Below are positions 3,001-64,000 of a DNA stretch of 64,000 nt, in pieces. Location: positions 26,039,504 through 26,103,503 of the forward strand of contig OZ037765.1 of NCBI GenBank assembly GCA_964035545.1, in the 5' to 3' direction. This stretch comes from Bugula neritina (lineage: Eukaryota; Animalia; Bryozoa). The first letter of the stretch is position 1, and each line of letters begins with the position of its first letter. The notes below the pieces were generated by a model that saw only the letters and a list, made by a program, of their open reading frames with translations, was not told where the DNA came from and did not search any database. Both the position numbers and the translations under genes were made by a program.

Positions 3001-4001
3001 ATGTAATTTAAATGAAATGTGTAGTTAGTCGATAATCGTGCACTTCAAAGTATTATTTTGCAAAATTACATATGATAAAGAGTCTAATGCAACAGCAGCA
3101 AAAAAGATACAGTCTACTTCATGGTCAGTGGCTTGAATGGTATTCTGTATGTGACTGCACAGTCCCCAGTCAGCTTTTCTCAAGTCCCTTTCCATACTAA
3201 TGTGCTCATAATTATTACCAGATGCTAATTCATTTGCAGTGCCAGTTGACCCATAAGTAAATAAACACACTTTGTCATCCGACTCGCTAAATATCTAAAA
3301 TATAGAATATATGACTTCTTGGGCATTCGAACATTTGTGCACATGCCTAAACATACCATTCAATTATTTGTCTAGAGCAAAAGCATTTTGTTACTACAAA
3401 ACACACACTATGCAAGAACAATAAATAGAAAATGACACAAGCAGAGAGTAAATTAATAATTGAGTATAAAATATTTAGCTATAATACAAAGTTTGGTATC
3501 TGTTAAACACTGATTAATAAGAAGAGTCACCAAACCTTGCGCTGAACCAACATGCTTAAAATATTCTTTGATTTTTCCAGACACGAGTTTCCATCTTGAT
3601 CTGTGAAACCCATTGATGGCCCAACATCAAGAAGAAGACCCACTACGTCCTTTATTAAATGACAGAACAAAAATAGTTTAAAATATCAAGTAAACTGGTT
3701 TTTAATAGAATAAAATTAAGGCCAGACAAAAATCTATAAAAGTTTCAATCAAATAATGAAATATAAGTTAAAGTATAAGTATAATTTCAACTATTACTAT
3801 AACCATTGTAATTGTCTATTTACTAATACTAATAGTAATACTAATACTATTAATATTAAGTATTACTATTACTATTAGTTAAGTATTACTATTAGCATTA
3901 CTATTAGTATAAGTTATTACTAATAGTAATACTAATAGTAATAGTATTAGTATTACTATCAGTATCAGTATTAGACTCAGTATAACAAAACGACTCACCA
4001 T
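1..4001 (-). CDS. XRCC5: Ku80 (X-ray repair cross-complementing protein 5), multi-exon, 3' part beyond left window edge
   Basis: Exons spell M|DVVGLLLDVGPSMG...LVQRK (ATG-only exon 4001-3999 then GTGAGT; exon 3649-3536), IFSESDDKVCLFTYGSTGTANEL...EVDF|MDALIV, GYRYGTDLVPF, FSVIGFT, VGIVRKVY, FIELPFIEDMRELEFPSL, PSQQQLDAVDNLIDAMDM, KMKNPTLQ: vWA and beta-barrel motifs of Ku80. About 12 exons in window. Confidence 0.95.
2920..3110 (-). other. U12-type (minor spliceosome) GT-AG intron in XRCC5
   Basis: Donor GTATCTTTTT; branch site TTCTTTAAC (2940-2932) about 13 nt before the CAG acceptor; splicing restores ...EVD-F-MDALIV. Confidence 0.85.
3760..3985. repeat. 6-bp periodic (AST-NNN)n tract in XRCC5 intron 1
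   Basis: ACTAAT AGTAAT ACTAAT ACTATT ... AGTATT ACTATC AGTATC AGTATT. Confidence 0.85.
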
Positions 4002-4049
4002 CCTTATTTATTAAAGTCTTTTACTTATCATCAATCTTATATTTCTAAA

Positions 4050-4440
4050 AAATAAATCATCACAGCTGACTGCAGGCCAATAACTAGTTTAGGATACTAG
4101 AGAAATGAGTTTGAATTCGAGTTCAAACCAATAGCAATACTCATCTGCAAGAGTGGGTATAGCATACCACAGTTTGTTATAAGGAGCCCCGAGTAGGAGG
4201 TGACTGAGTGCAATAGTTTAAGATTCTTAGTTTTAGAGCTGGAGGTCTAGGTTAGAACGTCAAATCTCAACTTAAACTTGAGACTCGAAGCTAGTGCACT
4301 CAGTACCCCCAACTTGGAGCTCTTTATAGCAAACGTCTTGTAATTTTATTGCCAGGGCGCCAAAGGGACAGATATAGCGAGTATAGATCACGTTGGTTTT
4401 TGCATTCCATCACAACGCCAATCACCATCGGGCGGTATGT
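4050..4440. promoter_or_regulatory. Bidirectional promoter XRCC5/PASK
   Basis: Lies between divergent genes and is locally GC/CpG-richer. E2F-like TTTGGCGCC (4356-4364, -), CCAAT (4128, 4418), TTTGAA/TTCAAA near-palindrome (4109-4128), + strand donor GGCG|GTATGT at 4435. Confidence 0.65.
4172..4334. mobile_element. Degenerate MITE-like inverted-repeat element
   Basis: About 48-bp imperfect inverted repeats: GTTTGTTATAAGGAGCCCCGAGTAGGAGGTGACTGAGTGCAATAG vs reverse complement of right arm GTTTGCTATAAAGAGCTCCAAGTTGGGGGTACTGAGTGCACTAG. No clear TSD. Confidence 0.55.
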
Positions 4441-4609
4441 TTCAATAATTTTAATTTATTTTTTCGCAAAGAGAACGTGATGTAGGCTTTTGGTTTTAGT
4501 TTTGCCTCTAGTTGTAGTTATCCATTTGATCTTGAAGTTATTTACTTGGTTTTAATGTTTATATCTACATAAGAAAATTTTCAAATATTATCATTTTGAT
4601 TCAATGATT

Positions 4610-5400
4610 GCGTCTCAGTCTAACACTCTTACTCATACTCATAGTCATAGTCTTAGTCTTACTCTTAGTCTTAGTCTTACTCTAACTCTTAGTCTTACCA
4701 ACACTAATAGTTATACTAATAGTAATAGTAATACTAATAGTATGACTATGAGTAATTGACTTACATTAACAGTAGTGAAACTGAGTAACACTTACACTTA
4801 CAGTTACACTAACTCTAAGTATAGCACTATCTGACTATGACTATCACTATGACCATCACCATCACTATGAGGATGACTACGACTAACAAGTAATAGGTAA
4901 CAGTAAGACTAAGTGTAACACACTTAGACTTACACTTACAGCGTGAGTGTCAGTGTGAGTATTACTAGTAACTAGCATTATCACCATGAGTATGATTATC
5001 ATTATGACTATGAGTACGAATCATTATCATAGTCTATGAACTATGAGTATCAGATTCAGTATGCTGTATGAGTAGTCAGTACGTTTATCACTATCAGTAC
5101 CACTATCAGTATGAGTATCACTATTGCTATGAGTATCAGCATGAGTTTCACTATGACTATGGGTATCACTATCAGTATCTGTATCATATGTGAGATGACT
5201 CTGAGTAGCAGTAACACTTACACTAACAGTAAGTGAGTAACTGCTAGTGGCTGATCGAAAATTATAAATTAAAATTGAATTAAAAACATCGTAAGCAATG
5301 ATCATAAATCTAAATGATAACGATGATCATTATGATTGTTATGCTTATAGTTAATGTTATACTATTTTATTCATTTACTCACTCTTAGTATAAGTAATAA
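4610..5400. repeat. 6-bp periodic (AST-NNN)n tract in PASK 5' intron
   Basis: ACTCTT ACTCAT ACTCAT AGTCAT AGTCTT AGTCTT ... ACTATG ACTATC ... AGTATG AGTATC; the longest tract in the window. Confidence 0.9.
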
Positions 5401-6036
5401 TATTTAATAGTATAACAAATACAAGTGTGTTAATGATGATTGCAATGACCAAAGTCAAAGTGAAATGTATAATTGAATATTTAGATTTTTAATAATAATA
5501 GGCATCAATAGTAATACAATAGGAATATGATTAAATCAGTAATATTCACATAGATACTTGTGTCTTCTTTATTAAAATTACATTATTACTCAAATTACTG
5601 TGTTTGTGACAATAATAATAATATAATATTCATAAACATAATGGTAAAAACCACAATGACAATGAGTTTTCTGGCAATGAGAATTATACTCATAATTGTA
5701 GGAATCTAAAATGTGCCATCACCAGTTGTAAAAGGCAGCAAAATATTGTTGATTAACATTTTAAAACTACGAATATAGTTTGAATAGACTATACACTGTG
5801 TGCTAAAATGTGAATAATTAAGGAACTAAATGCATTATGAGGGCACCAAGTGTTTTTATCCTCGGATGTATCATCATATATTTAAATTCCTATTTTATTA
5901 ACTAAATATTCTTACACTTTGGTAGGAATCGAGAATTATTCTAGTTCTGTGTTTTTATGTATTTCTATTTTAAATTGTTTTAATGTTTTTCTTATTGGTG
6001 TTACAGTATTGAGCAGCTTTAGATACATGCATTAGA

Positions 6037-15151
<9,115 letters not shown>

Positions 15152-15733: not shown

Positions 15734-18700
15734 CTAAGAGCTGATAAAATCAAAAGAACTCCTATGGTTTTGTGGACTGTCTTGTTTTTGGTCCAAAACT
15801 GGGTCATACCTCATAAATTCTCTAAATACAGCATCTGTTTTTTCATCTATGCTATAATCTCTCTTGTTCTCTCTGCTTTTGCTTCGGCTAAAATTTGCAT
15901 TGAGTAACTTAAAAAACACTCCTTGCTTAAGGCGCTTTGAGTTAGCAGGATTACCATCAAATGGCTGACTAGACACACAATTGGAATCTGTTGTGGGATA
16001 TTCGGCTGATTGCCAACTGCTTCCTTGAGGTCGTCTGTGGCAATTCTGAAAATCTTGGCGTTTTCTAGCAGCTGTTTTTAGTGCATAGTCTGTTGGCGTT
16101 TCAGTAAGTGTTTCAATATTTAGCGAGTCAAACGCCAACCCAAGAGTGGTAGTGGATGGGACAGTGTGAAGCTTGCTGTCCGAATCGGTGGTGGTGGATG
16201 ATTCGAATGAGGTAGTCACTTCCACCCGACTGGACTCTGATGACTGAGCACCTTCCGTGGTTATAGTATCAAAGCTATCGAAACTCTTCTCATTACTGCT
16301 GTTGGCATCTAGGTGACTCCTATTCCTTGTCTTCAAAATTCTTTGAAAATTCTGTCTTCTGGCAGTATAACTTTTCTCAGGAGGTTGAAGAAAATCCCTC
16401 ACTAGCATACTTTCATCTGCAAAATTTAAAAGAAAACACCTCAGCAACTATAGCTTTAGCGGTATTTATTGACATTTTACTCAGAAATAAAGCTATTGAC
16501 CATTTTCAGCTATAACATTAAGCAAAAATTAGAATAAGTTCAGTAGAATTTGCTCGTATATACTGGAACTGAAATATTGTACGTATTTTAATCATCTTTC
16601 CTTTCAGTACACTTTACTGGCTATTAGTCAGAATTTCTGAAAAAAAATTTGAACTTATAAAAAACTACAATATTATATAGTTTTATTACACAACTTAAAT
16701 TATAGTGCTTTAATATCCTCCAGTTAATTCACCTGATCTGTAGTTTTTGGTGTGGGGCATTATTTTTCAAGTATCATCAGAAGTACATTTCTCGACAAAA
16801 TTATTATTTACACATTTTCAAAACTATTATGCTGAACTGAGCTATAAATCATAGGTACCTGAAATAAAATATATAGACCACAAAAAAGCTCTTGCTAGAA
16901 TTTTGAAATGAAACTTCTAATTTAGTTGCTTTTTTGCAAAACAATACAACCAAGAAAAATATATTGACTGACCTGGCCAACGGGTTTTGCAATGACCATT
17001 TGTAAAATTGTGAAGATCTGATGAAACTGAACTAAATGCACCAATCCTTTCACCCTTTTCTGTTCTTTCAGCATCCAGCGTTGTACAGAGTACAGCTTTC
17101 TCATGTTCTTTCCTTCTTTGCTACAGCAAGTAAGATAGCTAAACACTATAATAGTCACATAATATAGCATGCATTCTGTAAAAATAGAAAAATGTAACTG
17201 TCCAAGAAACTTATTTGCTTTACTCAATAATCCTAGTTTTGTAGCATCACTATAGGACACCAAAGCTACAACAATTTTATTAGAAAATCATCTAACAGTT
17301 TATACTATAATAAAAAATTAGATAATTCCACAGCTTAGTTGAAGAGTTCTTTTTTTAACTTTGCACAGATAAATTCCTTTCAAAATATAAATTTAGTCAA
17401 GAAAATATGTGATACTTCTGCAATTTAATGAAGAAGCTTAATAAAGGATGACAAATAAGCCAGCATGAAAAAATACAAGTCTAACCTCTAATCGGCTACT
17501 AGTTGGAATATTTCACAGCTGACATATTTTAATAAATTTACAAACCTCATTTTGAATCTCATCAAGTTCCTCATTACTCTGTAAGCTCGCTCTGAGTTTC
17601 CAAATAGCTAGCTCACTTTTACTATTGCAAGTTGGTTGGCCATCAGGAGGAATGCCGGCAGTGTTTGGTGATCTGCTCTTTGGGCTATAACCTGTTACTG
17701 GCTCTTCTGTCAACACATATTAAATAAATTTAAATTAGTTTGTGGAACCATTTAATTTGTCTCTTTGTTTAGAGTGTGGCTAGAATGTTCCCATTTGAAA
17801 AAAACAAATGGTATTGAGCACCTTCAAAATCATTAAGCCTGCACCTATCTCAAAACTACTTTGTTTATTGGTTGAGTTGAGGCGACAGTATAAATGCTCC
17901 AAATTATGCATTTAAATTATAACAGCCTTTGTATAATAATATTAAACTAGTTTAAAGTTTAATTTTATGTATAAAATACACGTATGCATCGTTTATAAAT
18001 AGATTGCTTATTAGAAATGCCAAAGTTGATCACTATTAGGCTACAAATTAAACCATAAAAAAATCAGAATTGGCCCTCAGCAAAAAACTTTTCTAAAACT
18101 ACATTTGGACTACCGGCATTTAAATTAATTTTTGCAATAAAATAATCTATTCAGGTCCTTAAAACTGTAAACTCTGTTTATGACCATTTAATTTCTGACT
18201 TGTCAGACATGTATTAGGCTATAGCTCACTGATGTGAAACTTTCTTGAGCCAAATAATGATGAAGTTATACACAGTGCTCACCTGACGGATGGAGGAAGT
18301 GCTTCCAGGTGGTTTCATATTGACTTGCTGTTGCAGGTGGTAACAAATCTATATCATGAGTCATGCTGGGGTAATTAGCAAACCTAAATAGTATACCATA
18401 GAGTGTGTGTACATAATATATAGGCTACAGTGGAAAGGTGCAAGTGTAATGTTGCATATACATGTGAAATAAAACCACTTTAATTTTTCTAGCCAGCTAG
18501 CTGACTTTCCAGCTAGCTGGCTTTTCTAGCTAGATTTTTCTAAAAGCAATATTTTAAAATAAATTTGAGAAAGGGGAAAGTTTTATGTACTATAAAAAGC
18601 ATTTAGAAGGCATAGTAAGCAACGTTTATTAAAGCTTTTTTAAAGCCAAATTTGGAATGCATACAAACAAATAAAAAAAAACTCACGCAAGTTAATACTC

Positions 18701-21700
18701 GCTATCCCTGTGAGAAAACCCCTGATAAAAAGGGTTTTTGCTAAAGCGGGCTAAGGACATTTAAATGAGGCACAGGAGCAATTATGACTGGATGCTCTTC
18801 CTAACAACACCAATGGCCTTTGTCAGGCTCGAACCCATGACCTCGTGTTTACTAGGCAAACGCTCTAACCCCTAGACCACGGCTGCATACAAACAAATAC
18901 ATTTACGTTATATAAGATTGATAACATTGAGGAAATCTATGAGCAGATAATAGAAAGACTATAGAGCGGTTTTAACAGCTGCAATACATTTTTAATTATT
19001 AATATTATTATAAACATAAGCTAAAAAATTAGATGTTTTTGTGGTTAAAAGAGAAAGAATATCTTTAAAGTTTAAAAATAATTATGTCACCTAATATATT
19101 TTCAAATGGAGTTGGTGACAGTTTATAAGCATCAGACATATACTGAGCTTCATGATTATCTAATATTTGTTTCTAAGTAACAGAATAAACAGATTAGAAA
19201 TGACAGTCATCGATTCCGTTAGTTTTTGACTGTCCTATATATTGACCTCTACATCAATGGATTGTAAGATTCACACATACACATAAGGAGCATGCTCAAG
19301 TCTCAACACAAAAACTAAAACTTCTGAAACTAATTCCAACAAGGAACTTCATATAACTCTACCCGTCATCTGCCAGTATAGTTGTTTGTCTTCGAAGGGT
19401 CTGAGTTGTAGAGGCCGGGTCATCGTCCTGACTTTTAATTAATCTCACACATTTTTCTTTTGCTAAATGATCAAGCAGCTCTGTTTGTGTGGACTGCCTC
19501 CGTTTTGGCACGGGCCTATAAAAGCAAATATACCAATTGTGTATAACAAATATCTGGTGCAAAAGTTTTAAAATGTTGTATTCAGCATTAAAAACAGAAG
19601 CTTATAATTTACTCTCCTGTAACCTATATCTAACTTTATTTACTTGAATATTAAAAAAAAATTATATTCTATAAAAAAATTATAACATTACCTTCTAAAT
19701 ATTTACAAACATTAGGTAACGTAAAGATTAGTGAATTAAGACTATCTGCAGTTCATCCCAACTTAAATAGGTCTGAGTAATAGAACCAACCACTTGGTAC
19801 AGATTTCATACATAAATATTTACCTGAATGCAGAGAGAAAGGCTCGACTGGGCTGACAGTGTTGCTCTTCCTGACTAGCAGCACGCCTAGTTGACTCTGT
19901 CAACATTCTCACTTCACATGGAGTGTTGGCATCAATGACTAGATAAATAACAAAAAGCATGCTATGAAACTATGCTTATAAAATACTTTTACTGGTTTTG
20001 CCTTACCGTCCTTACAATTTACATTACAATATGTTTTTAACAAAATTAATTTTTATATCAACATAACAAGAAATTAATGAGTCAATGTTTTCAGGTTACT
20101 GGTGCCATTTGCTTAATTTTCCTGATAACATGCTGATTAAAATTTTATCAAGAAAGTAAGAAAGCCTAGCTGAATGTGTATGATGCAACGTTCATTGTCA
20201 GTAACACTTCATGCATGCGATTAGCTTGACATTTTCACGGTCTCTTAAATGCAGATTGTACTCTCTACCCATGGGACAGCATCAGCTATTGTTCACCTTC
20301 CTCTTTATGTACTGTTACTATTGACTGGCGTTTACATTTCTTAGAATAACACAGGCTATATATACTCAATTAGATTCATTCGAACTTCTGTTAGTCATAG
20401 TTATAACTTACCAGTAACTTCTGATCTGTTATCAGTGCACATGCTACTGTCCAATGAGCTTGGTAAAGGTTTTCTGCTGTTATTAAAAACAGCAATGTTA
20501 GCCTTAGAAGAGGTTCGTGATGATCTCATTCCATTCTGAGATGAGAGTGACTCCCTCTCTAAGCGCCATCTGCAAGTAGATAAATATTTTACTGAGGCGG
20601 TTTTCCAGTAAAGGCAAATTAATGAGCGATAACAGAACAGGTAACATAGTATGACATGTTATATACCTATGTCATGTGACATAATATGACATGCGACAAT
20701 GTCCCTAAACTTGGTCATCAAATTATTTTGATTGTACATGTACTAAAGGGCTGAGGCCTATTGCTTTTTCCAGTTACATAAAGTTTGGATGAACTGCTTT
20801 GTTTTAGGGTTTACTTCAGCAGAAAGCACATACTAGTGTTAATTGCTTTTAAGATGTCTCTACATAGTTATTGCATCTGATATGATGGGTTTAAGTTCAA
20901 GTAAATATGGTCTTATAGTTACATAAGTTTGATTATATACCTGGTTGATTGCACATGAGTTTAATTACAGTATATGCAACTCAATGTAGTTACCTTGGAT
21001 CGATGTAAAATACCTACATAAAGAAAACTCTATAAGCTAAAGTGAAAAAGATATATTTTGTGCCATTTAAGCGGTTGATCAAAGGGATCACCATGTTTTG
21101 AAATAGATGTCCTTTTTTTACCCAAATGCAGGAGTTAATGGAGAGTGAGAGCTAATCGAAATGGACTGCAATGTTGATTAATAATTTATGACAAATTCAT
21201 TAAACCTACAAAATGCACAGATGCATAATTAATATACACACTACGAAAGTTCTAGGTTGAGCAAGTACTTTGCATTGAATATAGGTAGTTATAAACCTAA
21301 AGTCAATTATATTTTATCTGTTAGTTTTAGACTCATAAAATTGTATAGCGAGCAAGAAGGTCTCATCTGATTTGGAATTAGGTTATATCTCATAATTTAT
21401 TCAACTCGGGTTTAATACACTGCTCGTAAACTCAATTATATCTAATAAACTCACTATCACTAGGTTATATATTACGCCCACTCTTATGAGTATCAGCAAA
21501 ATTCATCGTTTATATAATAAAAGGCATTGATTTCTTAAAAATAACCAGTTATTGTATTTTTAAAGGTTATAAACCTTGTTGTGAAGTCAGTGACTGCAAC
21601 GGCCAAGCCCTAGTTTCACAGATAATATCAGAAAATTACAGTAGGATGATCTCAGCTGACTTACTGGCTGGGAGAATTGCACTGCACGCTACTTCCTGTC

Positions 21701-25286: not shown

Positions 25287-26569
25287 ACCACTTTTCAATA
25301 GATGGCAAGGAAGCTTGAAGACCAGCTGCAATCACGAATCCCCAAGACACAGCGACTATCACAAAGCAGACCTACAATTAATACATGCATGTGAATGTCA
25401 TAGCTGGGCAATACTCGCCATATAAACTATAAAAATGGTTATCACCCACCAAAACGTATAGATGGCATTTAATATGTAGAATAAAATATTACAGTGACTA
25501 TTTCATCTACAAATGTGATAACAAGGAAAAGATACACGGCTCAATTGCAGTTGTGAACTCTTATTAAAGTTTTAATATTTCCGAGAAAACAATTCCACAA
25601 TCTACCTTTATTTTATTACACATTTGCTAGGATAAAATGGTGAGTAAATTAGAAGACAACTCAGAACGGTTTTAGAATCAAATTATGAAAATAACAATGG
25701 AACGAAAGTTTATAATACAAGGCTAGCTCGCACCATTAGAATGAAATGCTAAGCAAGTGGAACTTGAAAATTGCATTGGATAGCTGTTATGGCTGTTGAT
25801 GAACAGCACTGGCAGCCCGTGGTATTAATTAATGATTAAAACAGGCACCTAGACCAAAAGGCATAATGCACAATAAATGAGGGGAATTTAATATAGCCAT
25901 AGTATTTGCCGTAAAATCTTCGCAATTGACTAGAGAACCAACTTTAGAGATTATATTATAATTTTCCACCTAATCAAAAATAAAGTCCAAAATTAAGTAC
26001 AAATTAATAGAAATTAATACAATATTTTCAGCATACTAAAGAATTGATTTGTGTTTTTAATGCATTGTTGAGATATGCTTAAACTTCAAAAGCATATTCA
26101 TACTCTAACAGTCTGTGGTGAGAGATTAGTATTTCACTGAGTTGGTATTAACCCAACATAACTACACAGCATATGTCAATGTGGTGCTTCATTTGACTCT
26201 AATTAATTACATGTAATAACTTAAGTAAGGTTATACTAAAGGTGTACTATTTACATCTTAATGGTTTTTCTTTTCACTTCTAGCTTCTGTTGGTTCAAGT
26301 TAAAAATAAGTTGAAGGCAAAAGGCAACCTGTGAATTCAACCTATAATCAGCTGCTGCAAAACATTACCAGTCTTCAATATTACTATTGATAACTGGTTT
26401 TTACTATAACCTGCTTGAATTAGGGCTTATTTAGGTTTAAAATCTATCTTAATCATAATGGCTAGTCCATCTTTATCTAAGCCTAGTTTTGGTAGTAATA
26501 CAGTAAACATAGTACTAGTAGATCTACAGCTACTCCTAGGTTGAACTTGAAGCTGATGGCATGAGATTC

Positions 26570-26700
26570 AGATTTAGCTTACAGTTACACCATCAATATC
26601 ATACTCTATTAGTATGAATATCATTAGCAGTATGAGTATGACTATGAGACCGAGTATGACTATGAGACTGAGTATCAGTATCACTACGACTAGAATAATT
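26570..26700. repeat. 6-bp periodic (AST-NNN)n tract in CRCP 5' intron
   Basis: AGTATG AGTATG ACTATG ... AGTATG ACTATG AG ACTG AGTATC AGTATC ACTACG ACTAG. Confidence 0.8.
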
Positions 26701-26989
26701 TGAATAACATAAAATTAAATAATCAATCACAATGTGAGCTCTAATTCAATAGGCAAAGTCAAATAACAATGTGAATGCTTGGCATTAATAATATCATTAT
26801 GCTAATTCATTAAATAATTTATCAAGTTGAATTTAAAATAAAAATTAAATCAAAATGAGGTGAATGAATATAAATAATATTTATATTAATATTATAATTA
26901 TTATTATTATTATACATTCATTTTCAAATTGAAATTGTAATTTTAATTTATACTTTGTACCGTGCTTTCTATGAGTTCAACAATCTTCT

Positions 26990-27420
26990 TACTTAGAGTG
27001 ACCATCGTACAAAAGCAGACATCGCTGTGTAGACAAAATTAATTTTACATATAAACGTATAATTTTATTTTTTAAACGTTATAATTAATAACGTCTAACA
27101 CTAATGTAAGCTTGTATTTACACTTAGTTCTATAAAAAGTGCATTAGCGTCACTGGTGGTTATAACATAAGGACTGCAGCAAATCGGTTGACATATTGGC
27201 GGCGACAACTCTTCGTAAAGCAACTCGTTTAGAAGTGGCCTAAATTATATGTAGTTATCTTCCTTCTCTAAACGAAAACGCTGCCTTTGCATAAACAGCG
27301 AGTCAAATCCCATCACGTGTATGCAAAACCGCGTCTTTTATTGTTGCTATGAAAATGATCTGTGGGAAGGCGACTACCAAAGAAACATAAAATTTGAATT
27401 CTGTTTTTTACAGGTTACCC
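26990..27420. promoter_or_regulatory. Bidirectional promoter CRCP/IQCB1
   Basis: CpG-richer segment between divergent genes; - strand donor CTAA|GTAAGA at about 26992; ATTGG (CCAAT) about 27195, CACGTG 27314, X-box-like GTTGCTATGAAAAT 27343-27356. Confidence 0.55.
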
Positions 27421-28027
27421 CAATTTCAGTATTAGAACTAAGTAAATTTTAAACTGTTGTAACATGTTTAGTATAAATTATATTACTTATTAAATTGTCA
27501 TTTTAAAGTTATCATAATTGTTTCACTATTTTAAAATTCAATATTATCACTATGATTTATTCATTTGATTATATTTATTGATAATGATTCTTACCTATTC
27601 TCACCTATCTCCACTTTGTCCTGTTCGGGTAGCGAGATCATGATTTATTGCTTATCATTATGATAAGGACAAATTCATTATTACTATGATTAACATTTAA
27701 GTCAATAACTCTAAGTATAGGTGCATTAGTATTACTATTATTATTAAGTATTATATGTGTCACTGTTCAAAATTATGTTTGAACTTTACAGTTAAGTTTA
27801 TTCTATTGCTCAATGCCAAAATAAATATTAATAATAGTAATACTGATACATTACATGTGTATAGACTATAGTTTTAAAGAATTGTAATGTGATTTCTCAT
27901 ACTCATTTAGTTTTACACTGACAGTGACATTGATACTCACATCCCTAATATAGTTTTTCTCACCTTTCTCCACCATGTGTGGTAAAATTGTAGCATGTGC
28001 TTTTATTCTTTTTGATTTATGTCCTCC

Positions 28028-40721: not shown

Positions 40722-41539
40722 AATTAATTAAGATTACTAAAAATACAATATAAATTAAATTGCATATTAGAAATAACAATAAGAACAGCAATACATATAG
40801 CTACCCTGGAAATTAATAATGTTTGAATCTAGCCATTAGATTACTTTATGAATTTGTGACATTCCAGCACAATTATAATCAATGATGGAACACATTTTCC
40901 TAAAACTAAGCGTATGAGGCTAACAAAGACAGAGCCATTGCCAATTCTTTCCAATAAAGTTTCACCAATTTCCTATGTGCCAATCTTGGTTTGACTGCAG
41001 CTGGTGGAGACATGGAAAAAGGTTGAAGATCGAACTTAGCAAGTCTGAACCAGCCTATCAGCTCAAATCCAGTTTGATTGTGGGTAAAGCAATCCTGGAA
41101 AAATGCCAGAGCAACTCGCATATTAACGAAGTAGAAAAGTTGGCTGCCTGAAAAAACCTTACACCATCCTGCTAGCTAAGAAAACAGTACTTTACTCCTC
41201 TCTTAGAATTAGTTTTAAAGTTAAAATATGCTAACATTAAAATGGTCACCAGGCCCCCTAATGACTGATGATTAATAATAATAACATATACCATAATAGC
41301 AATATCGCACTTGTCTGTCAACAGTAAAAATATAACTTGAAAGATAAAACACTAAATTAAGTTGTAGCTTGTACCTAAAAAAAGCTATTCCACATTTCAC
41401 TATTAATTTATATTTTATACTTGGAGTTGTTTTACTATTTCAATTTCGTTAGGTCCCAAGCGTCATAGCCCATAGCAAAACAATCACGAAAAGGGGTTTA
41501 GTATCTTTCCAAGGAAGTTAACTCCATGTTTATTACAAC

Positions 41540-41725
41540 CGTTTCGCTTATACCTTCATGCAATTACTCCCTGGAACTCGGTCTTCGCCGACAAACTGCT
41601 TTAGAAAATCTCTGCAAGCAGGCTGGTATAGCACCCAAGTGACGATAATCGTCAATTTGAATTCTTAGAACTTGGCCTGAGCGGAAGCTATCTATTAACC
41701 TTGCAGTGGTTTTATTAGTAAGTCA
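41540..41725. promoter_or_regulatory. Bidirectional promoter upstream of CUL2 and the minus-strand H3.3-pseudogene/TM-gene unit
   Basis: CpG-richer; palindrome TGACGAT-A-ATCGTCA (41640-41654), ETS-like GCGGAAG (41681); outward-facing donors AAG|GTATAA (-, about 41553) and TTA|GTAAGT (+, about 41718). Confidence 0.55.
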
Positions 41726-41959
41726 AACCGTTACAACTAGTAGTGAACTAGTAGAACTGCTACTAGCTCTGCCAATTTCAATTTGCAATGCAACTTGGCG
41801 TATAACACTAACTCTAGTGAAGCTTTGTTAATGTTAATTAAATCTTAGAATTAGTCTTATTCTATCCTTATACTTCTAGCCAATCACAATCACAATGGAT
41901 TAGAATAAATAAAAATAATTATAATTATTAATAATATTTTGAATTTGATATTCCATTCA

Positions 41960-42860
41960 CTTGACTCAGTTAGACTTAGTGAGTTACTGTTAGTGTTACT
42001 ACTTACTCTTACTGGTAGTGTTACATTGTGATACTGATAGTGATTATCATTTATTTTTAATTTTATACTAAATTTAATATTCCGTTTGGCATTTCAATAC
42101 TGATATTGATAGTGATACTGTTACTCTTACTCTTAGTTTTTCAGACTTCAGTTAAATGTTAATCATACTCATGTCTCATAGTCATAGTCACAGTGACAGT
42201 CATAGTCATAGTGATTGTGTAAGTGTTACAGTTACACTTGCGGTTAGTGTTACTCATCAGTTTTAAATTAAAATAGCATAAGATTAAGACTCTGTCTAAA
42301 GCTTCGCAGTGACCCTCACACTGAATCTGATGTTTAATGTAACTCACTACCTCCAAGTACTGTCAGTAACAGTAACTGTGTTATACATATATGCCTATGA
42401 ATGTTAAGTCTTAAGATCTAAATGAAAATTTGACCATGTGTTTCAGTTTATCTTTATCATTATGACTTTCTCACTAAGATTCACTGTTAGTTCTAGACAA
42501 TTTCAGTTTATATTTTAATCTTTGTTTTATTTATTTAAACTTCAAATTAAAATAAAAATAAAAATTGACAAGCTTAAAGTTAAACTTAAATTAAAGTCAA
42601 GGTAGAAATTAAAAACTAAGGAGTGTAATCATGGTGACTCACTATGACTGTGAGACTGCGTAAAACTAAGTGTAAATGAGCAACTGCAAGGGACACTGAT
42701 AAGTTGAAGTTAGCATAGCCATAAATCATAATCAATATGAATATCTTAATGATAGTTAAAATAAAAACAAGTCATGAATATGATCATAGCAAACAAGCAT
42801 GAACATCAACATAGTGATAGTCATTATGGTTACCAACAGTATTATCAGTTATCACTTATC
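41960..42860. repeat. 6-bp periodic (AST-NNN)n tracts in CUL2 5' intron
   Basis: AGTGTT ACT ACTT ACTCTT ACTGGT AGTGTT; AGTCAT AGTCAC AGTGAC AGTCAT AGTCAT AGTGAT; main block 41960-42380, weaker block 42620-42860. Confidence 0.85.
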
Positions 42861-42873
42861 AGGCTAATAATGT

Positions 42874-43062
42874 GTTGGGGTTAGAGCATCAGCCTTGTAA
42901 ATGTGAGGTCAATAGATTGAGTGCAAGCACCAGTCGGAATATTAGGAAAAGCATTCAGCCATAGTTGCTTTTGTGCCACATCAGAAAAACTCCTTAGCCA
43001 GCTTTAAAAAACCCCTTTTCGTTAGAGGTTCTCACAAGGATAGTGACACTGACTGTAAGCTT
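42874..43062 (+). mobile_element. tRNA-derived SINE, degenerate copy
   Basis: Shares GGGGTTAGAGC, TTAGGAAAAGCAT..., TGTGCCAC, CCTTAGCC-GCTTTA and TTCTCACAAGGATAGTGA with the 18.7-kb copy. Confidence 0.75.
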
Positions 43063-52310: not shown

Positions 52311-52829
52311 CCATCAAATTGATTATTGGAATTGGAGGCTTAAAATGCCCACTTCTAGTGCTAATAATAGTTGCTAAGCCTTCAAGTAATGTAGTTTTGA
52401 GCATATATTTAAAAAAAATAAATTGATATATTTTAGTTTGCCGTGTTTCTAACTTGAACTTATAGGTGTGCTATCAAATTTATTATAATTATTAGGAAAA
52501 TCGAAATGAATTTGAAATTTTGAATGTAAATTAATGATATTGATAGTGATTATAATCATAATGCATGTCGATATGAAATTTAATATAAATATCAAGTTCA
52601 ATATAATTTAATATTATTATTACAATTTCAAATATTATTGTAATATAAATATAAAATATAGATATATGAATGTAAAATTAAAGTTAAAGCCTAAAGCCAA
52701 GCCCAAAGGATAAATTTAAGTAATAAATATAAATATGTTTTGAATTTTCATTTTGATTATAAATTAATAACAATATGTAATAAAAATGGAATATTGTAAT
52801 AATTATAATTAATTATATTTACTAATAAT

Positions 52830-52980
52830 AATCTTCATAGTCATTAGTCACAGAATGAGTATGAGTATCACTATCATAGTCATACATTTACAATTACATG
52901 CTAATGGTAGTACTCATAGTCATAGTTGTAGTTATTGTGATAATCAAATTCAATATAATAATAATCATAATGATAATGTG
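52830..52980. repeat. 6-bp periodic tract in LRRFIP 5' intron
   Basis: AGTATG AGTATC ACTATC ... ACTCAT AGTCAT AGTTGT AGTTAT; looser ANT-NNN periodicity from about 52530. Confidence 0.75.
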
Positions 52981-57300: not shown

Positions 57301-60300
57301 GCTGTTGCTGAAACATGCTTCATCGCTGGTCACTGCTGTCATTGCTTTTACTGAAATCTTATGTTTTATTTGACAGACTTGCATGTCAAAATCTGACAAC
57401 TTCTTTTACAAGAACATAGGCTAAAACCTTAAGTCTGACCATTTTTTAATTGTGTCTGAAATGTAAGCCTCCAACATACCAAAGTGTTTATTGATATTCC
57501 CAAAACAGGTCAACGCTCTACCAATCTATTACTTTGTTGCATTTTTCAACTAATGGTCTGTGCTGTAGTTCAGGCTCTATGTGTTATCCTTAATAGTCAC
57601 CTCTTGTTTCTTCCTATATTTCTACTACTCAGAAAAAGCTCACGTAACTTTATAGTCACTATTCCTGTAAGAAACTTTTTTAAAAGCAGTCTTATACGGC
57701 ACAGGAGCGATTAAGACTGAATGCTCTTCCTAACATCACCAATGGCCTTTACTGTGGATTGAACCCATGACCTTGTATCCTTCTACTACTCAAAATGCTA
57801 TCAATTTCAGTCTTGATTCGCTATAAAATTGGAGTTTTTGCATTACTATAAGATAGTCAGTCATTCAGGGTGTTGCTAGTCAACTTCGTTATTTGGGTGA
57901 TGCATCATTTTGTGTCAAGTTTATGACTGAAATTTGAATAATAAAGTTGTTAAGACTGAATAGTCTAGTTTGATTGAAAGCCGAGTAACTCCCCCATTAT
58001 AGTGTTGTATTACACACTGAGAATCTCTACAAATAGGCTAGCTGAACTTCTGCATCATTTTCATGATTGGAGTAGCCTTTTGTGCTTTTTGACGCAATGT
58101 GTTTCTTTTTTATGTTGGATTTTCAATTTTATTTATTGAGTTATGAAAGGTGGAAGAAAATCTGGAAAGGATACATTTCTTAATTAGACGTGGCAAGATA
58201 ATAGCATTTCTAGCAAAAACTAATCATTGTTAAAATACACCAATAGTCCAGCTGCTAAGGTTTTTTAACTCTGGTGTATGTTTTTGACAGTATTTTGTCA
58301 TCATATCTTTCATTTTACACCGATGATCTCAAATAACTCATTGTCAAGTACGTGGTCACATTTGTTTCATTTGTATGAGTTACAGTTACTTTTGAACATC
58401 TCCGACAATATTGTGAGCTCTAAATTTTTTCATTCTATAATAACTGTTTTAAGTAGTATCATTCAAATAAATTTAGACACATTATGTAATACCTGATGGT
58501 CATCACTACAGTGTTGTATATATGTACTACAGTGTTGTATATATGTACTACAGTGCTGTGTATATGTACTACAGTGTTGTATATATGTACTACAGTGTTG
58601 TATATATGTACTACAGTGCTGTATATATGTACTACAGTGCTGTATATGTGTACTACAGTACTGTATATGTGTACTACAGTACTGTATATGTGTACTACAG
58701 TGTTGTATATGTGTACTACAGTGCTGTATATGTGTACTACAGTACTGTATATGTGTACTACAGTGTTGTATATGTGTACTACAGTGTTGTATATATGTAC
58801 TACAGTGCTGTATATGTGTACTGCAGTGTTGTATATATGTACTACAGTGTTGTATATATGTACTACAGTACTGTATATGTGTGTTGCAGGAACATAGGTT
58901 AATATATGTACAAGCAGAGGAAGTTCCGCCTGCTTCTAGTCGTCTTGCTGAATCCAACGAGTCTAACGGCCGCGATGAGTTCTACATAGAGTTAGAACCA
59001 GAGCCAATCAAAGCAGCTCTTATTTCACAAGATATAATGGAAATATTAGATACATACACTCCCGGAACAATAGGTAGAGTTGGTGAATTATTCAGTTATG
59101 TAAGGCAGGAGTTTAATTTATTACATTGTATTGTTTCTCTGCCGTAGTTATATGAAGTGGTCATAGATGACACTATGCAACCAATTGGTATATAATGTTG
59201 AATTCTTTTGCAACATGTGCAGCTGCTCTTTTTAGAGAGGCAGCATCATTAAAAGTTGTCGTTTTTAGTAGAACTTTACTAATTTTATTTGACCTTAAAA
59301 TTGCAAAATGTTACCCAAAAGTGTTGTCTTCAAATACCTTAGTTACAAAGACATTTGTATTTAAGCAGCATGTTGATGAAAATAGTTTTATAATTTCAAT
59401 TAAGCTTTTATGTAGTTGAACACATATTATAATAAGTGTTTTAACTACCAGTCTAAGACTAAGTATGTAGGCTAAAGTGTTTTAATGCTTGCTGAAAATC
59501 ATTTGGGGATAGCCTGTAAAAAATTTGAAATAGTACTTAGAATAGATTTTTTGTATGCTGCAACATTGCTAATTTTTTTAAAAATTAAATCAATGCTAAT
59601 ATTATAATTTTATTTAGAATACTTTTCACTGTGTTTCATATTCTCATATGGTTATACCTTATACTTTTTCTATTTGTTTTTACAGAAGATAAAGTCAGAT
59701 GTGTCCTAAATGAAAATTCAAAGTTGAAGAGAGAGGTATGCACACACCTATCTCGAGCACAGTAACTCCAACCTATATAGTTATAACAAGCCTGCTGTGT
59801 GTATCAACAAGTGGTTTTTGTATTGCAGTTAAATAACGTCAAAGAAGATTTGGACAGCGAAAGAGAGCAGGCATCTAAACGACCCCAGAAGAGGTCACCT
59901 GATGTTCAGCTGAATGGAGTGGATGTGTCTAGCAATCCTCAAGTGGTGGAGTTACAGAGGGAGTCCACCAGACAAATCAGTGAATATAAACTTAAAGTTC
60001 AGAAGGCGGAGCTAGATATAGCCGCATTGGAGAGCAGTGTACGTGTGTTTGTGCTCAATTCTGTACACGTGAATGATACTATATAAATTACTGTGTAATT
60101 TCTTAAATTGTGGCTTCGATGCTTTAATTTGTAGAACATGGCATGTTTTTATGTTTTAAATACCATATAATTTTATTATAAAATCATCATAAGCAAGTTA
60201 TGGCATAGATCACGATAGCCTTTCATTTTAATCTTAAATTTGTTTTTAATGATCAAATAAATTTATTTATAATTTTTTAAACTGTATTTCTGAAATGGTA

Positions 60301-62362: not shown

Positions 62363-62571
62363 GTGGTCTAGGGATTAGATTTTAGAGCGCTTGCTTAGTA
62401 AACACAGTCATGGGTTCGAACCCCAGTAAAAGCCATTGGCATTGGTGATGCTAGGAACAGCATAATTGCTTCTGTGCCACACAAAATGAATAAGTCCTTG
62501 ACCCCTTTAGAAAAACTTTTTCCTTCAGGGGTTTCTCACAGGGATAGTGACTATAAACTTGCTGCAGTTTT
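62363..62571 (+). mobile_element. tRNA-derived SINE, near full-length copy
   Basis: GTGGTCTAGGG...TAGTAAACAC..GTCATGGGTTCGAACC...GCCATTGG...CATAATTGCT...TTTCTCACAGGGATAG...AACTTGC..AGTTTT. Confidence 0.88.
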
Positions 62572-62938
62572 ATTAAAGGTACATATATGATATATCCATC
62601 GAACTATAAGTTTTAGTTCCTACCATCTATCAGTCTGGGTAATACAAAGGGTTAAAGATCAAGCTGGGGTATTGCTGGCACACCTAGTTTGGATTTCCTT
62701 TCAGAAATCGCTAAGCGAAGCCAAATGTTTCAAGCCAATTCTAACTTTTGATTAGGGGTGTAGAGTTAGGGTTATAGGTAATAAAACACGCCTACCAGGA
62801 AATCTATGCTCCACCTAATGCTTTTCCCTCGCATATTTTCTTTTGTACTCAGAAATCAGCGCGGCCATCTGCCCCCACAATATCGGGATTGGTATTCATT
62901 TGATGTAAATAACTTTTTTCTGTGTTTCAAGTGCAATT

Positions 62939-62975
62939 ATGGGTGTCGACATTGAACCTATTACCCCTGGCGATG
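62939..62975 (+). CDS. FKBP1A: FKBP12-type peptidyl-prolyl isomerase, first coding exon only
   Basis: MGVDIEPITPGD-G|GTAAG; a 37-nt phase-1 exon as in FKBP12 genes; YY1-like GCGGCCATCT at 62861. Confidence 0.85.
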
Positions 62976-63019
62976 GTAAGACTAAAATAATTACAATTAC
63001 TGATTTACTAATAGTGGCT

Positions 63020-63330
63020 CTAACTTTGAAACTGAAAATAAAAGTGTCACGGTGACACTCACTCTGACTGTGAGTGTGAGTGAGTGCCGAGCGGCTAAAA
63101 CTAAAAGTAAAATTGAATCAGTAGGTGCAACTGGAAGCTCAATACTGGGCAGTTGTCAATTCGACAATTGGGCTTTAAGTTTAAGAAGAGGTAAAAGTTA
63201 GCTTTATTACTTATACTTATAGTTATAGTTACAGTTGTAGAGTTAATGTTTTTACTCAGTTAATGTTATACTTATGATAATTAAATTAAGTATAACTTAT
63301 TAACTATAAGTTTAACTTTAAGTTAAAAAT
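63020..63330. repeat. 6-bp periodic tract in FKBP intron 1
   Basis: AGTGTC ACGGTG ACACTC ACTCTG ACTGTG AGTGTG; ACTTAT ACTTAT AGTTAT AGTTAC AGTTGT; ACTATA AGTTTA ACTTTA AGTTAA. Confidence 0.8.
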
Positions 63331-64000
63331 AAGTAAGTTTGAGTAATATTTGGATTAATAAATTATATGTAATGAATATAATTAATAAAATGAAGATCTA
63401 ATCAATAATTTAAGTTATAATCAAAATCATAATGATAATGCAAATTGGAATTGTAAAACTAAAAGTTAAAGTTTTACGGACTAGTCCACAGTTTAACTTG
63501 ACAGTTACAGTTCCACATCACGGTCATTGGAACTATTAATTTTACAGCATGATTATAGCCATTAGACGTGGCCTTGCTGATTCAATAGTGATGAGGTCTA
63601 ACATTGAAATTAAATGTTGTGGATAAAACGAAATGTAATTAATTGTCAAATAATCATTAGTTCTAATTTTTATTGCATCAATAAATTTAATTATATGTGT
63701 CCATGATTTTTGTCTCACTATGCTAATGCTAATAGTAATAAATGTGAAACCTCAGATGTACAAAAATAGTGCAATATGAATCTGATGCTGATTTTTTCAA
63801 ACTGAAAAGTGTATATACTATAATTACGTTGTCAAAATGCAATGATTTTATGCAACCTACCCGCAATTTCAACTGTGAAATTGATCATAGATATGGTTGG
63901 CATATTAGTGCATATAATAAGCTTTGACCTGCTTGTTTCAATAACATACATAAAGCTTCTGGTTGTTGTTTAATAAAAAAAAGTCTAGCACAAATGTCAA

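Follow-up and report, generated by a model that had tools for sequence, protein, structure and literature searches.

Several described systems resemble parts of what is found at this bryozoan locus. Footprints of hAT elements (Ac/Ds, Hermes, TcBuster) retain the target duplication, and arise through a hairpin on the flanking DNA that is opened off-centre (PMC5873905, PMC3499496, PMC5499845), leaving at the joint a short palindrome whose middle base is complementary to the one that flanked the element (PMC5873905). The hAT target shares a T near one end and an A near the other with the tracts described below (PMC5873905, PMC3499496, PMC5499845), and at least one hAT element, TcBuster, prefers transcription start sites (PMC3499496). 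Galileo, a member of the P superfamily, makes 7-bp target duplications with the consensus GTAGTAC (observed: GTAGTAC, GTACTAC and GTACTAT; PMC2775673). Short tandem repeats are enriched at gene starts (PMC3566118). Two further systems are comparable by analogy only. The PATCs of C. elegans are a consensus-free periodic signature in the introns of a gene class, with a proposed role in chromatin and silencing, and immunoglobulin switch regions are kilobase-long degenerate tandem repeats, rich in a short palindromic motif, lying in the intron behind a promoter and a non-coding exon and serving as sites of repeated programmed breaks.

The tracts analysed here, in which ACT or AGT recurs every 6 bp around a changing three-base spacer, differ from each of these. 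PATCs consist of 10-bp-phased runs of A or T throughout the introns of germline genes, whereas the tracts have a period of 6, an A-[C/G]-T anchor, no A/T runs, a position in the first kilobase behind the promoter and a copy-and-flip structure; 10-bp A/T phasing of the PATC kind was not found (recurrence at lag 10 was at chance, 1.07, for A[C/G]T). Switch regions occur at a single locus, are cut via cytidine deamination in lymphocytes alone, and have a G-rich, strand-asymmetric sequence. Promoter microsatellites are pure, of one orientation and variable in copy number, whereas in the tracts anchor orientations are mixed at random and the spacer changes every few units. Known hAT footprints are single scars at one site, while the tracts are kilobase stacks at thousands of genes. 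No described counterpart was found in the literature on bryozoan genome repeats, first-intron hexamer periodicity or stacked footprints.

Hexamer tracts beside gene starts

To describe the extent of the pattern, recurrence of A[C/G]T was scored across the window (the whole 64-kb stretch of DNA that was analysed, which belongs to the chromosome-scale contig C1 in an assembly of 216 Mb). Recurrence reached 2.1 times chance at lag 6 and 1.9 times chance at both lag 12 and lag 18, with other lags close to 1, confirming the earlier note's description of A[C/G]T every 6 bp with a drifting spacer. A strict threshold was passed by five segments (3715-4050, 4536-5317, 26564-26748, 41914-42305 and 63184-63346) and by no sixth anywhere in the 64 kb, so that the claimed near-absence from internal introns holds in this window; Tandem Repeats Finder (TRF) reported periods of 6, 12, 18, 24 and 30 with 63-95% matches at the same segments. 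The seven intervals listed in the earlier note make up 4.8% of the window and contain 54% of its A[C/G]T lag-6 pairs (40 per kb inside versus 1.74 per kb outside). Densities per kb were 93 for XRCC5, 66 for PASK (4610-5400), 46 for CRCP, 39 for FKBP, 27 for CUL2, 14 for IQCB1 (8 times the outside rate) and 11 for LRRFIP. Five of the seven are strong tracts and two, IQCB1 and LRRFIP, are weak, as had in part been said; the PASK interval does hold a strong tract, but the tract proper stops near 5250. Genome-wide, a count of units in register gave 49,008 occurrences of six units against 5,918 for the reversed pattern used as control, and 69,224 of five units against 11,141. On the sense strand ACT and AGT stood at 132:146 with base skews near 1; the expected strand symmetry is thus present, and it argues for a cause at the level of DNA and against one at the level of RNA.

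Gene starts were approximated by splice-site reading, homology of one exon and CpG clusters (exons were searched singly, by reference), and positions of transcription start sites are therefore predicted ones. The features concerned are as follows; where no strand is given, none was assigned.

3760-3985: Ku80/XRCC5 tract, gene on the minus strand; the commonest units are A[C/G]TAAT and A[C/G]TATT, TRF periods 6, 12 and 18
3999-4001, minus strand: predicted Ku80 start codon, with GTGAGT directly after it (3998-3993); the frame runs on into the exon at 3536-3649
3998-3993 (5' splice site) to 3651-3650 (AG), minus strand: predicted Ku80 first intron, 349 nt
3536-3649, minus strand: Ku80 exon 2, the first substantial coding exon (open reading frame; XRCC5 alignment)
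4001-4434: CpG-rich region between the divergent Ku80 and PASK genes, a putative bidirectional promoter
Ending before GTATGT at 4435-4440, plus strand: putative non-coding PASK exon 1, from splice-site reading
4604-5250: tract of the PASK-like gene, 650 bp, in the predicted first intron
26564-26748: CRCP-side tract of a second divergent pair; short, with a CpG cluster (26901-27513) 150 bp away
27660-27950: IQCB1-side tract; weak and loose, under the strict threshold
41914-42305: CUL2-side tract; strong, beside a CpG cluster (41290-41844)
52530-52980: LRRFIP interval; weak, mostly AT-rich period-6 DNA with few ACT or AGT
63184-63346: FKBP-side tract, beside a CpG cluster (62672-63129)

Lying between splice sites predicted at 3998-3993 and 3651-3650, the Ku80 tract fills 65% of the putative 349-nt first intron. 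The translation of exon 2 aligned to residues 12-52 of XRCC5 chains 6tyt/6tyu at E=0.03, a weak match over a single stretch. Upstream, positions 4001-4250 hold 11 CpG, where the window averages about 3 per 250 bp, and a CpG cluster was called at 4117-4657. The PASK tract begins 170 bp past the GTATGT at 4435-4440; it is interrupted by several phase breaks and contains blocks of either orientation, with A[C/G]TC[A/T]T units at 4625-4698 and, at 5084-5180, the mirror form A[C/G]TAT[C/G]. An 18-bp higher-order repeat (95% matches) lies within the CRCP-side tract at 26634-26675, and the CUL2-side tract continues more loosely to about 42860. The LRRFIP interval has an A[C/G]T density of 0.035, under the window mean, and its TRF units are AATATA, ATAAAT and ATAATT.

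The genome is depleted in CpG (732 observed versus 1,698 expected), and CpG clusters, taken as a promoter proxy, are found next to the tracts (clusters at 4001-4250, near 27000-27500, at 41250-41500 and near 62700-63100). All five strong tracts of the window abut such clusters, and the tracts themselves are CpG-poor. At nine Ras-family genes on other chromosomes, most tracts were located between 0.5 and 4.5 kb ahead of the first coding exon. Across the window and these nine gene starts, 13 of 15 tracts fell within 1 kb of a CpG cluster, at a median distance of 69 bp versus about 1,000 bp under random placement. The claim that tracts lie near gene starts is upheld on this measure, and the proxies for gene starts support a position adjoining the promoter in the 5'-most intron. 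On small contigs of the assembly (L001-L010 and others; C27-C307), Ras-family genes read through many TAA and TAG codons, which fits a ciliate contaminant.

A search with the open reading frame of the PASK exon recovered an orthologous JGI contig (L051, sample 3300003318) and a distant contig (L052) that has no tracts. The former is 88-92% identical to window positions 5303-7805 over intron and exon, consistent with a closely related lineage, and starts at the equivalent of 5303, 50 bp beyond the PASK tract, as if short-read assembly had broken there. In practice such sequence appears to interrupt short-read assemblies in first introns, and it will mislead the annotation of bryozoan repeats and promoters. 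Haplotigs or second alleles of 3300-6500 were not found in the assembly, and an open reading frame within the tract (5030-5305, minus strand) had no match in the protein collection.

A copy-and-flip signature inside the tracts

Fine-scale statistics were based on about 230 kb of this genome. Adjacent spacers were identical in 104 of 258 pairs (40%), and among 90 single differences between spacers there were 52 complement swaps, 29 transitions and 9 others. By comparison, the anchor C/G matched that of its neighbour in 47% of 1,265 pairs at lag 6, and in about 50% at every lag up to 72. An anchor-free measure, comparing 9-mers 6 bp apart that differ only at the centre base, returned 187 complement swaps (about 75%), 38 transitions and 25 other mismatches, and 172 of the 187 swaps (92%) had a palindromic three-base context (A_T 137, T_A 32, C_G 3). 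In about 200 kb chosen with no eye to tracts (the window, the starts of nine Ras genes and further loci), the excess of complement swaps was seen at lag 6 (197 of 327, of which 78% were palindromic) and also at lag 12; it was weaker at lag 3 (48% in palindromic context) and absent at lags 4, 5 and 7-10. Single flips outnumbered adjacent double flips by 346 to 67. Triples of like C/G state occurred at 0.18 against a chance value of 0.25, and C or G made up about 75% of the junction bases at the anchor centre. Higher-order repeats of 18, 24 and 30 bp are also present in the tracts, which shows that multi-unit slippage or unequal exchange acts too.

A C/G centre that is fully randomised in young copies cannot have its source in slippage followed by point mutation, nor in selection on a motif, and because the centre is randomised while the spacer is inherited, the flip must accompany the copying. 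The signature is a mutational one, left by a process in which six bases are copied and the joint is flipped; conservation would leave another pattern.

These observations bear directly on three other explanations. Ordinary hexanucleotide microsatellites, slipped and then point-mutated, would account for the period-6 arrays of TRF with their 63-95% matches, and microsatellites are reported to be dense near human promoters (PMC3566118). Decay of such arrays is expected to be rich in transitions and to keep the anchor C/G, whereas here swaps make up about 75% of mismatches and the C/G has no memory; the tracts do not behave as single-orientation units under ordinary point mutation. Arrays from other organisms do: among metagenome matches to an eight-unit pattern (80 contigs), ACT and AGT were mixed in 11 of 127 cases, against 6 of 7 here, and the non-bryozoan matches are ordinary microsatellites from unrelated samples. 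The same is true of 7-bp AGT-anchored arrays in this genome (11,240 versus 291), which are one-orientation (AGTAYAY)n repeats that vary by transitions and look ordinary. The earlier note's judgement that these are not ordinary slipped microsatellites is borne out, and the microsatellite explanation, already largely refuted, is very unlikely. Two of the 11 mixed non-bryozoan matches, L086 (Ga0214921_10002374, 24% G+C) and L115, are mixed hexamer arrays (ACTTCC/AGTTCC; ACTATT/AGTATT/AGTATG); since they combine ACT and AGT in one array, a copy-and-flip process may operate in other organisms as well. Period 8 in this genome is mostly a single 16-bp satellite. In a 16-bp satellite at G000:C1:74842-75748 and 87466-87636, an ACT/AGT position switches between C and G among copies and a second ACT of each unit stays fixed. 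Two near-perfect intronic minisatellites of the window (7868-8093, 20-bp unit, 11 copies, 99%; 58505-58882, 21-bp unit, 18 copies, 93%) are rich in TGTATA/TACAG-like words, as are the 7-bp arrays.

Descent of the tracts from one transposon or satellite, as decayed copies with shared ends, might be read from the AT-rich tract on the Ku80 side, which has 264 matches in the genome. When 3300-6500 was searched genome-wide, however, these matches were limited to a simple stretch of A[C/G]TATT type, on both strands and at sliding offsets, with no shared ends of the kind that define an interspersed repeat or satellite family, and the 650-bp PASK tract had no match in the whole genome. The tracts do not align as copies of one element with common ends, and a common ancestral element is hardly credible. 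The one genuine interspersed repeat found near the tracts is a tRNA-derived SINE of unrelated sequence. It is about 215 bp long with a tRNA-like head and a T-run tail, and has at least 3,817 candidate copies genome-wide (in the window at 18673-18886, 62382-62571, 57677-57776 and 42939-43047; also in L023, L031, L032 and L039), many of them with 92-95% identity to the copy in the window. At 62382-62571, near a promoter, the SINE contains CATTGG as an exact tandem duplication of 6 bp, which the others lack.

The third explanation is the one that the earlier note had put forward, namely that the A-[C/G]-T frame is maintained by selection as a cis-regulatory or chromatin signal, such as a tract that counters silencing, a boundary of nucleosomes or methylation, or an array recognised by a repetitive DNA-binding protein. 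It would suit the consistent position at gene starts, in the window and at other loci, the abutment of CpG-poor tracts on CpG clusters, and the preference for anchor A, anchor T and a central C/G, which is far above expectation for a genome of 67% A+T; a mutational origin is, moreover, compatible with later use. Selection alone leaves unexplained why the C/G is randomised beside identical spacers and why complement swaps in palindromic context occur at lag 6 only. Phase is repeatedly broken inside tracts, units vary from gene to gene, and the sole orthologous contig found (L051) ends at the tract edge. A selected signal read as a periodic code finds no support in the 40% of identical spacers, the memoryless C/G, the lag-6 palindromic swaps and the phase breaks, and selection as the explanation of the tracts is improbable.

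A staggered-cut model and a break-repair rival

We favour, with confidence that stops a little short of even, the reading that the tracts are stacked scars of break repair, each event comprising a 7-bp staggered cut and a one-base palindromic joint. An enzyme would repeatedly cut open, promoter-flanking chromatin with a stagger of 7 bp, preferring sites with T second and A second-last (nTnnnAn), and the cut site would then be duplicated as in the insertion of a cut-and-paste transposon. On rejoining, as after excision, one end base would be turned into a single junction base in a palindromic A-X-T, possibly by hairpin opening with an added palindromic base, for a net gain of 6 bp. Each event would make two new target sites, so that scars would stack into (A-[C/G]-T-NNN)n arrays in which the spacer comes from the neighbour, the C/G is near a coin flip and the two strands are alike.

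The arithmetic behind the stagger is simple. An n-base duplication with such a joint reads x1..x(n-1), junction base, x2..xn, for a net gain of n-1, so that steps of 6 bp with an A-X-T joint call for a stagger of 7 bp at nTnnnAn. In a toy simulation, a 7-bp stagger and one palindromic junction base produced lag-6 ACT/AGT arrays with 43% same-S neighbours, nearly all swaps being palindromic complements, and an 8-bp stagger produced lag-7 arrays. Two features depart from the simple scar model: it does not predict the C/G content of about 75% at the junction base, and the depletion of like C/G triples (0.18) is milder than the 0.08 given by the pure model.

Other routes to the joint were considered. 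An origin from 3 bases of an element end joined to a 3-bp target duplication is less likely, since all three positions of the spacer show complement swaps as well (T_A and A_T contexts); isolated XYZ-A[C/G]T-XYZ sites are barely enriched. A two-flip joint of a 6-bp duplication is disfavoured because single flips far exceed adjacent double flips. Fold-back or large inverted duplication was rejected as a general cause, because long perfect palindromes are no commoner than in a flip-randomised control and the tract examined folds no better than adjacent intron DNA (z of -2.0 versus -3.55).

Scars might also arise with no transposon at all, from recurrent promoter breaks (transcription-linked, topoisomerase-linked or meiotic) whose end joining adds short palindromic copies, amplified by array instability in the form of slippage or unequal exchange. 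That no matching element was found and that transposase genes are few would fit this account, as would the 18-30-bp higher-order repeats, which speak for instability at the level of the array, and a perfect odd palindrome at locus L041 that is centred on an anchor C/G and has arms of about 80 bp. At this locus (L041:1440-1860, G000:C5:7442800-7443200), inverted arms of about 80 bp surround a 290-bp tract, and in downstream repeats of the same unit the centre measures only 24-27 bp, the perfect odd palindrome being one such repeat; the tract at the palindrome centre thus differs greatly in length between neighbouring copies. Against this account, the fixed 6-bp step and the T...A frame look like the outcome of a site-specific staggered cut, and the known spontaneous or topoisomerase breaks have staggers of 2-4 bp. 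The lack of excess in long perfect palindromes and the lack of any gain in folding over neighbouring intron DNA count against it too, and we consider a transposon-free origin unlikely.

The stacked-scar model would make the tracts a by-product of breakage and repair at gene starts and not a sequence code, which is our best reading, if one that falls slightly below an even chance. If it is true, ordinary gene starts of an animal hold a long, self-renewing record of repeated DNA cutting, which would give a direct view of where and how often a transposase or nuclease acts in the germline, and here would be a case of mutation producing a genome-wide gene-start signature that is mistakable for a regulatory code. 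The combination of a six-base copy, a flipped joint and a signal at lag 6 only offers a simple test for other genomes.

Candidate elements and enzymes

Transposase matches in the 216 Mb comprised 14 of hAT type and 4 of P type. The elements concerned are as follows.

L048:1376-4422, L049:1339-4385 and L050:1426-4472: young hAT family 1, 3,047 bp, with a 549-aa open reading frame and ends CAGGGTTGGGGT
L173:2591-5162 and L174:2628-5199: young hAT family 2, 2,572 bp, with ends CAGTGATGCTCAACC
L179:4967-5587 (G000:C8:1833960 region): P-element/THAP9-type transposase fragment, with PF21787 (RNase-H-like) and PF21788

The three copies of the 3,047-bp family are 99.8-99.97% identical and have target duplications ACCTACAC, GTATCTAG and CTTACTAC; the two copies of the 2,572-bp family are 99.8% identical, with ACCTAGGA and GTTTAAAC. 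All five measured hAT insertions have 8-bp duplications in which, as is usual, the second base is T and the seventh A. One of the five young copies, that in L050, lies in ACT/AGT-rich DNA. The tracts resemble hAT footprints in retaining the duplicate, as seen in the identical spacers and the lag-6 self-match, and in the palindromic joint, as seen in the 172 of 187 swaps with palindromic context. They differ in that the 8-bp duplication (nTnnnnAn) was not found, the tract step being 6 bp and the T-to-A spacing 4, which fits a 7-bp site and is one base less than in the hAT target. Since both young hAT families make 8-bp duplications, 7-bp steps would be expected with this joint, and the visible hAT elements do not fit.

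An element census of about 230 kb, in which inverted repeats flanked by direct repeats of 2-10 bp were sought, recovered the 3,047-bp hAT family, which served as positive control, and missed the second. The census was swamped by the self-similarity of the tracts, and within these limits it gave no candidates with 6- or 7-bp target duplications and no Galileo-like element. The palindromic Galileo target, [C/G]-T-A-[C/G]-T-A-[C/G], has the skeleton of the tracts, and its stagger of 7 is the one that the scar model would require. P elements have a strong preference for promoters. When they excise, long overhangs derived from the element ends stay behind and hairpins are not known to form, so that a one-base palindromic joint is not the scar known for this type. 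An enzyme of P-superfamily or Galileo type is therefore a candidate agent only.

A more specific form of the scar model, which we regard as rather doubtful, is that germline promoters are repeatedly cut by a transposase, resident or domesticated, whose stagger is 7 bp (P/THAP9-like, or an unrecognised relative of hAT) and which leaves a ledger of breaks. Such a ledger would be kept at broadly expressed genes, would occupy about 3% of the genome and a kilobase per gene, and would renew its own target sites; the host may by now rely on the tracts, perhaps to set a boundary beside the CpG-rich promoter. A P-type transposase is present in the assembly, with four matches to PF21787, and the best open reading frame also has the GTP-binding insertion domain PF21788. 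This reading frame stands among separate ones on L179, with a reverse-transcriptase fragment upstream and ACT/AGT tracts, one of them close upstream, at L179:3026-3340 and 8629-8800.
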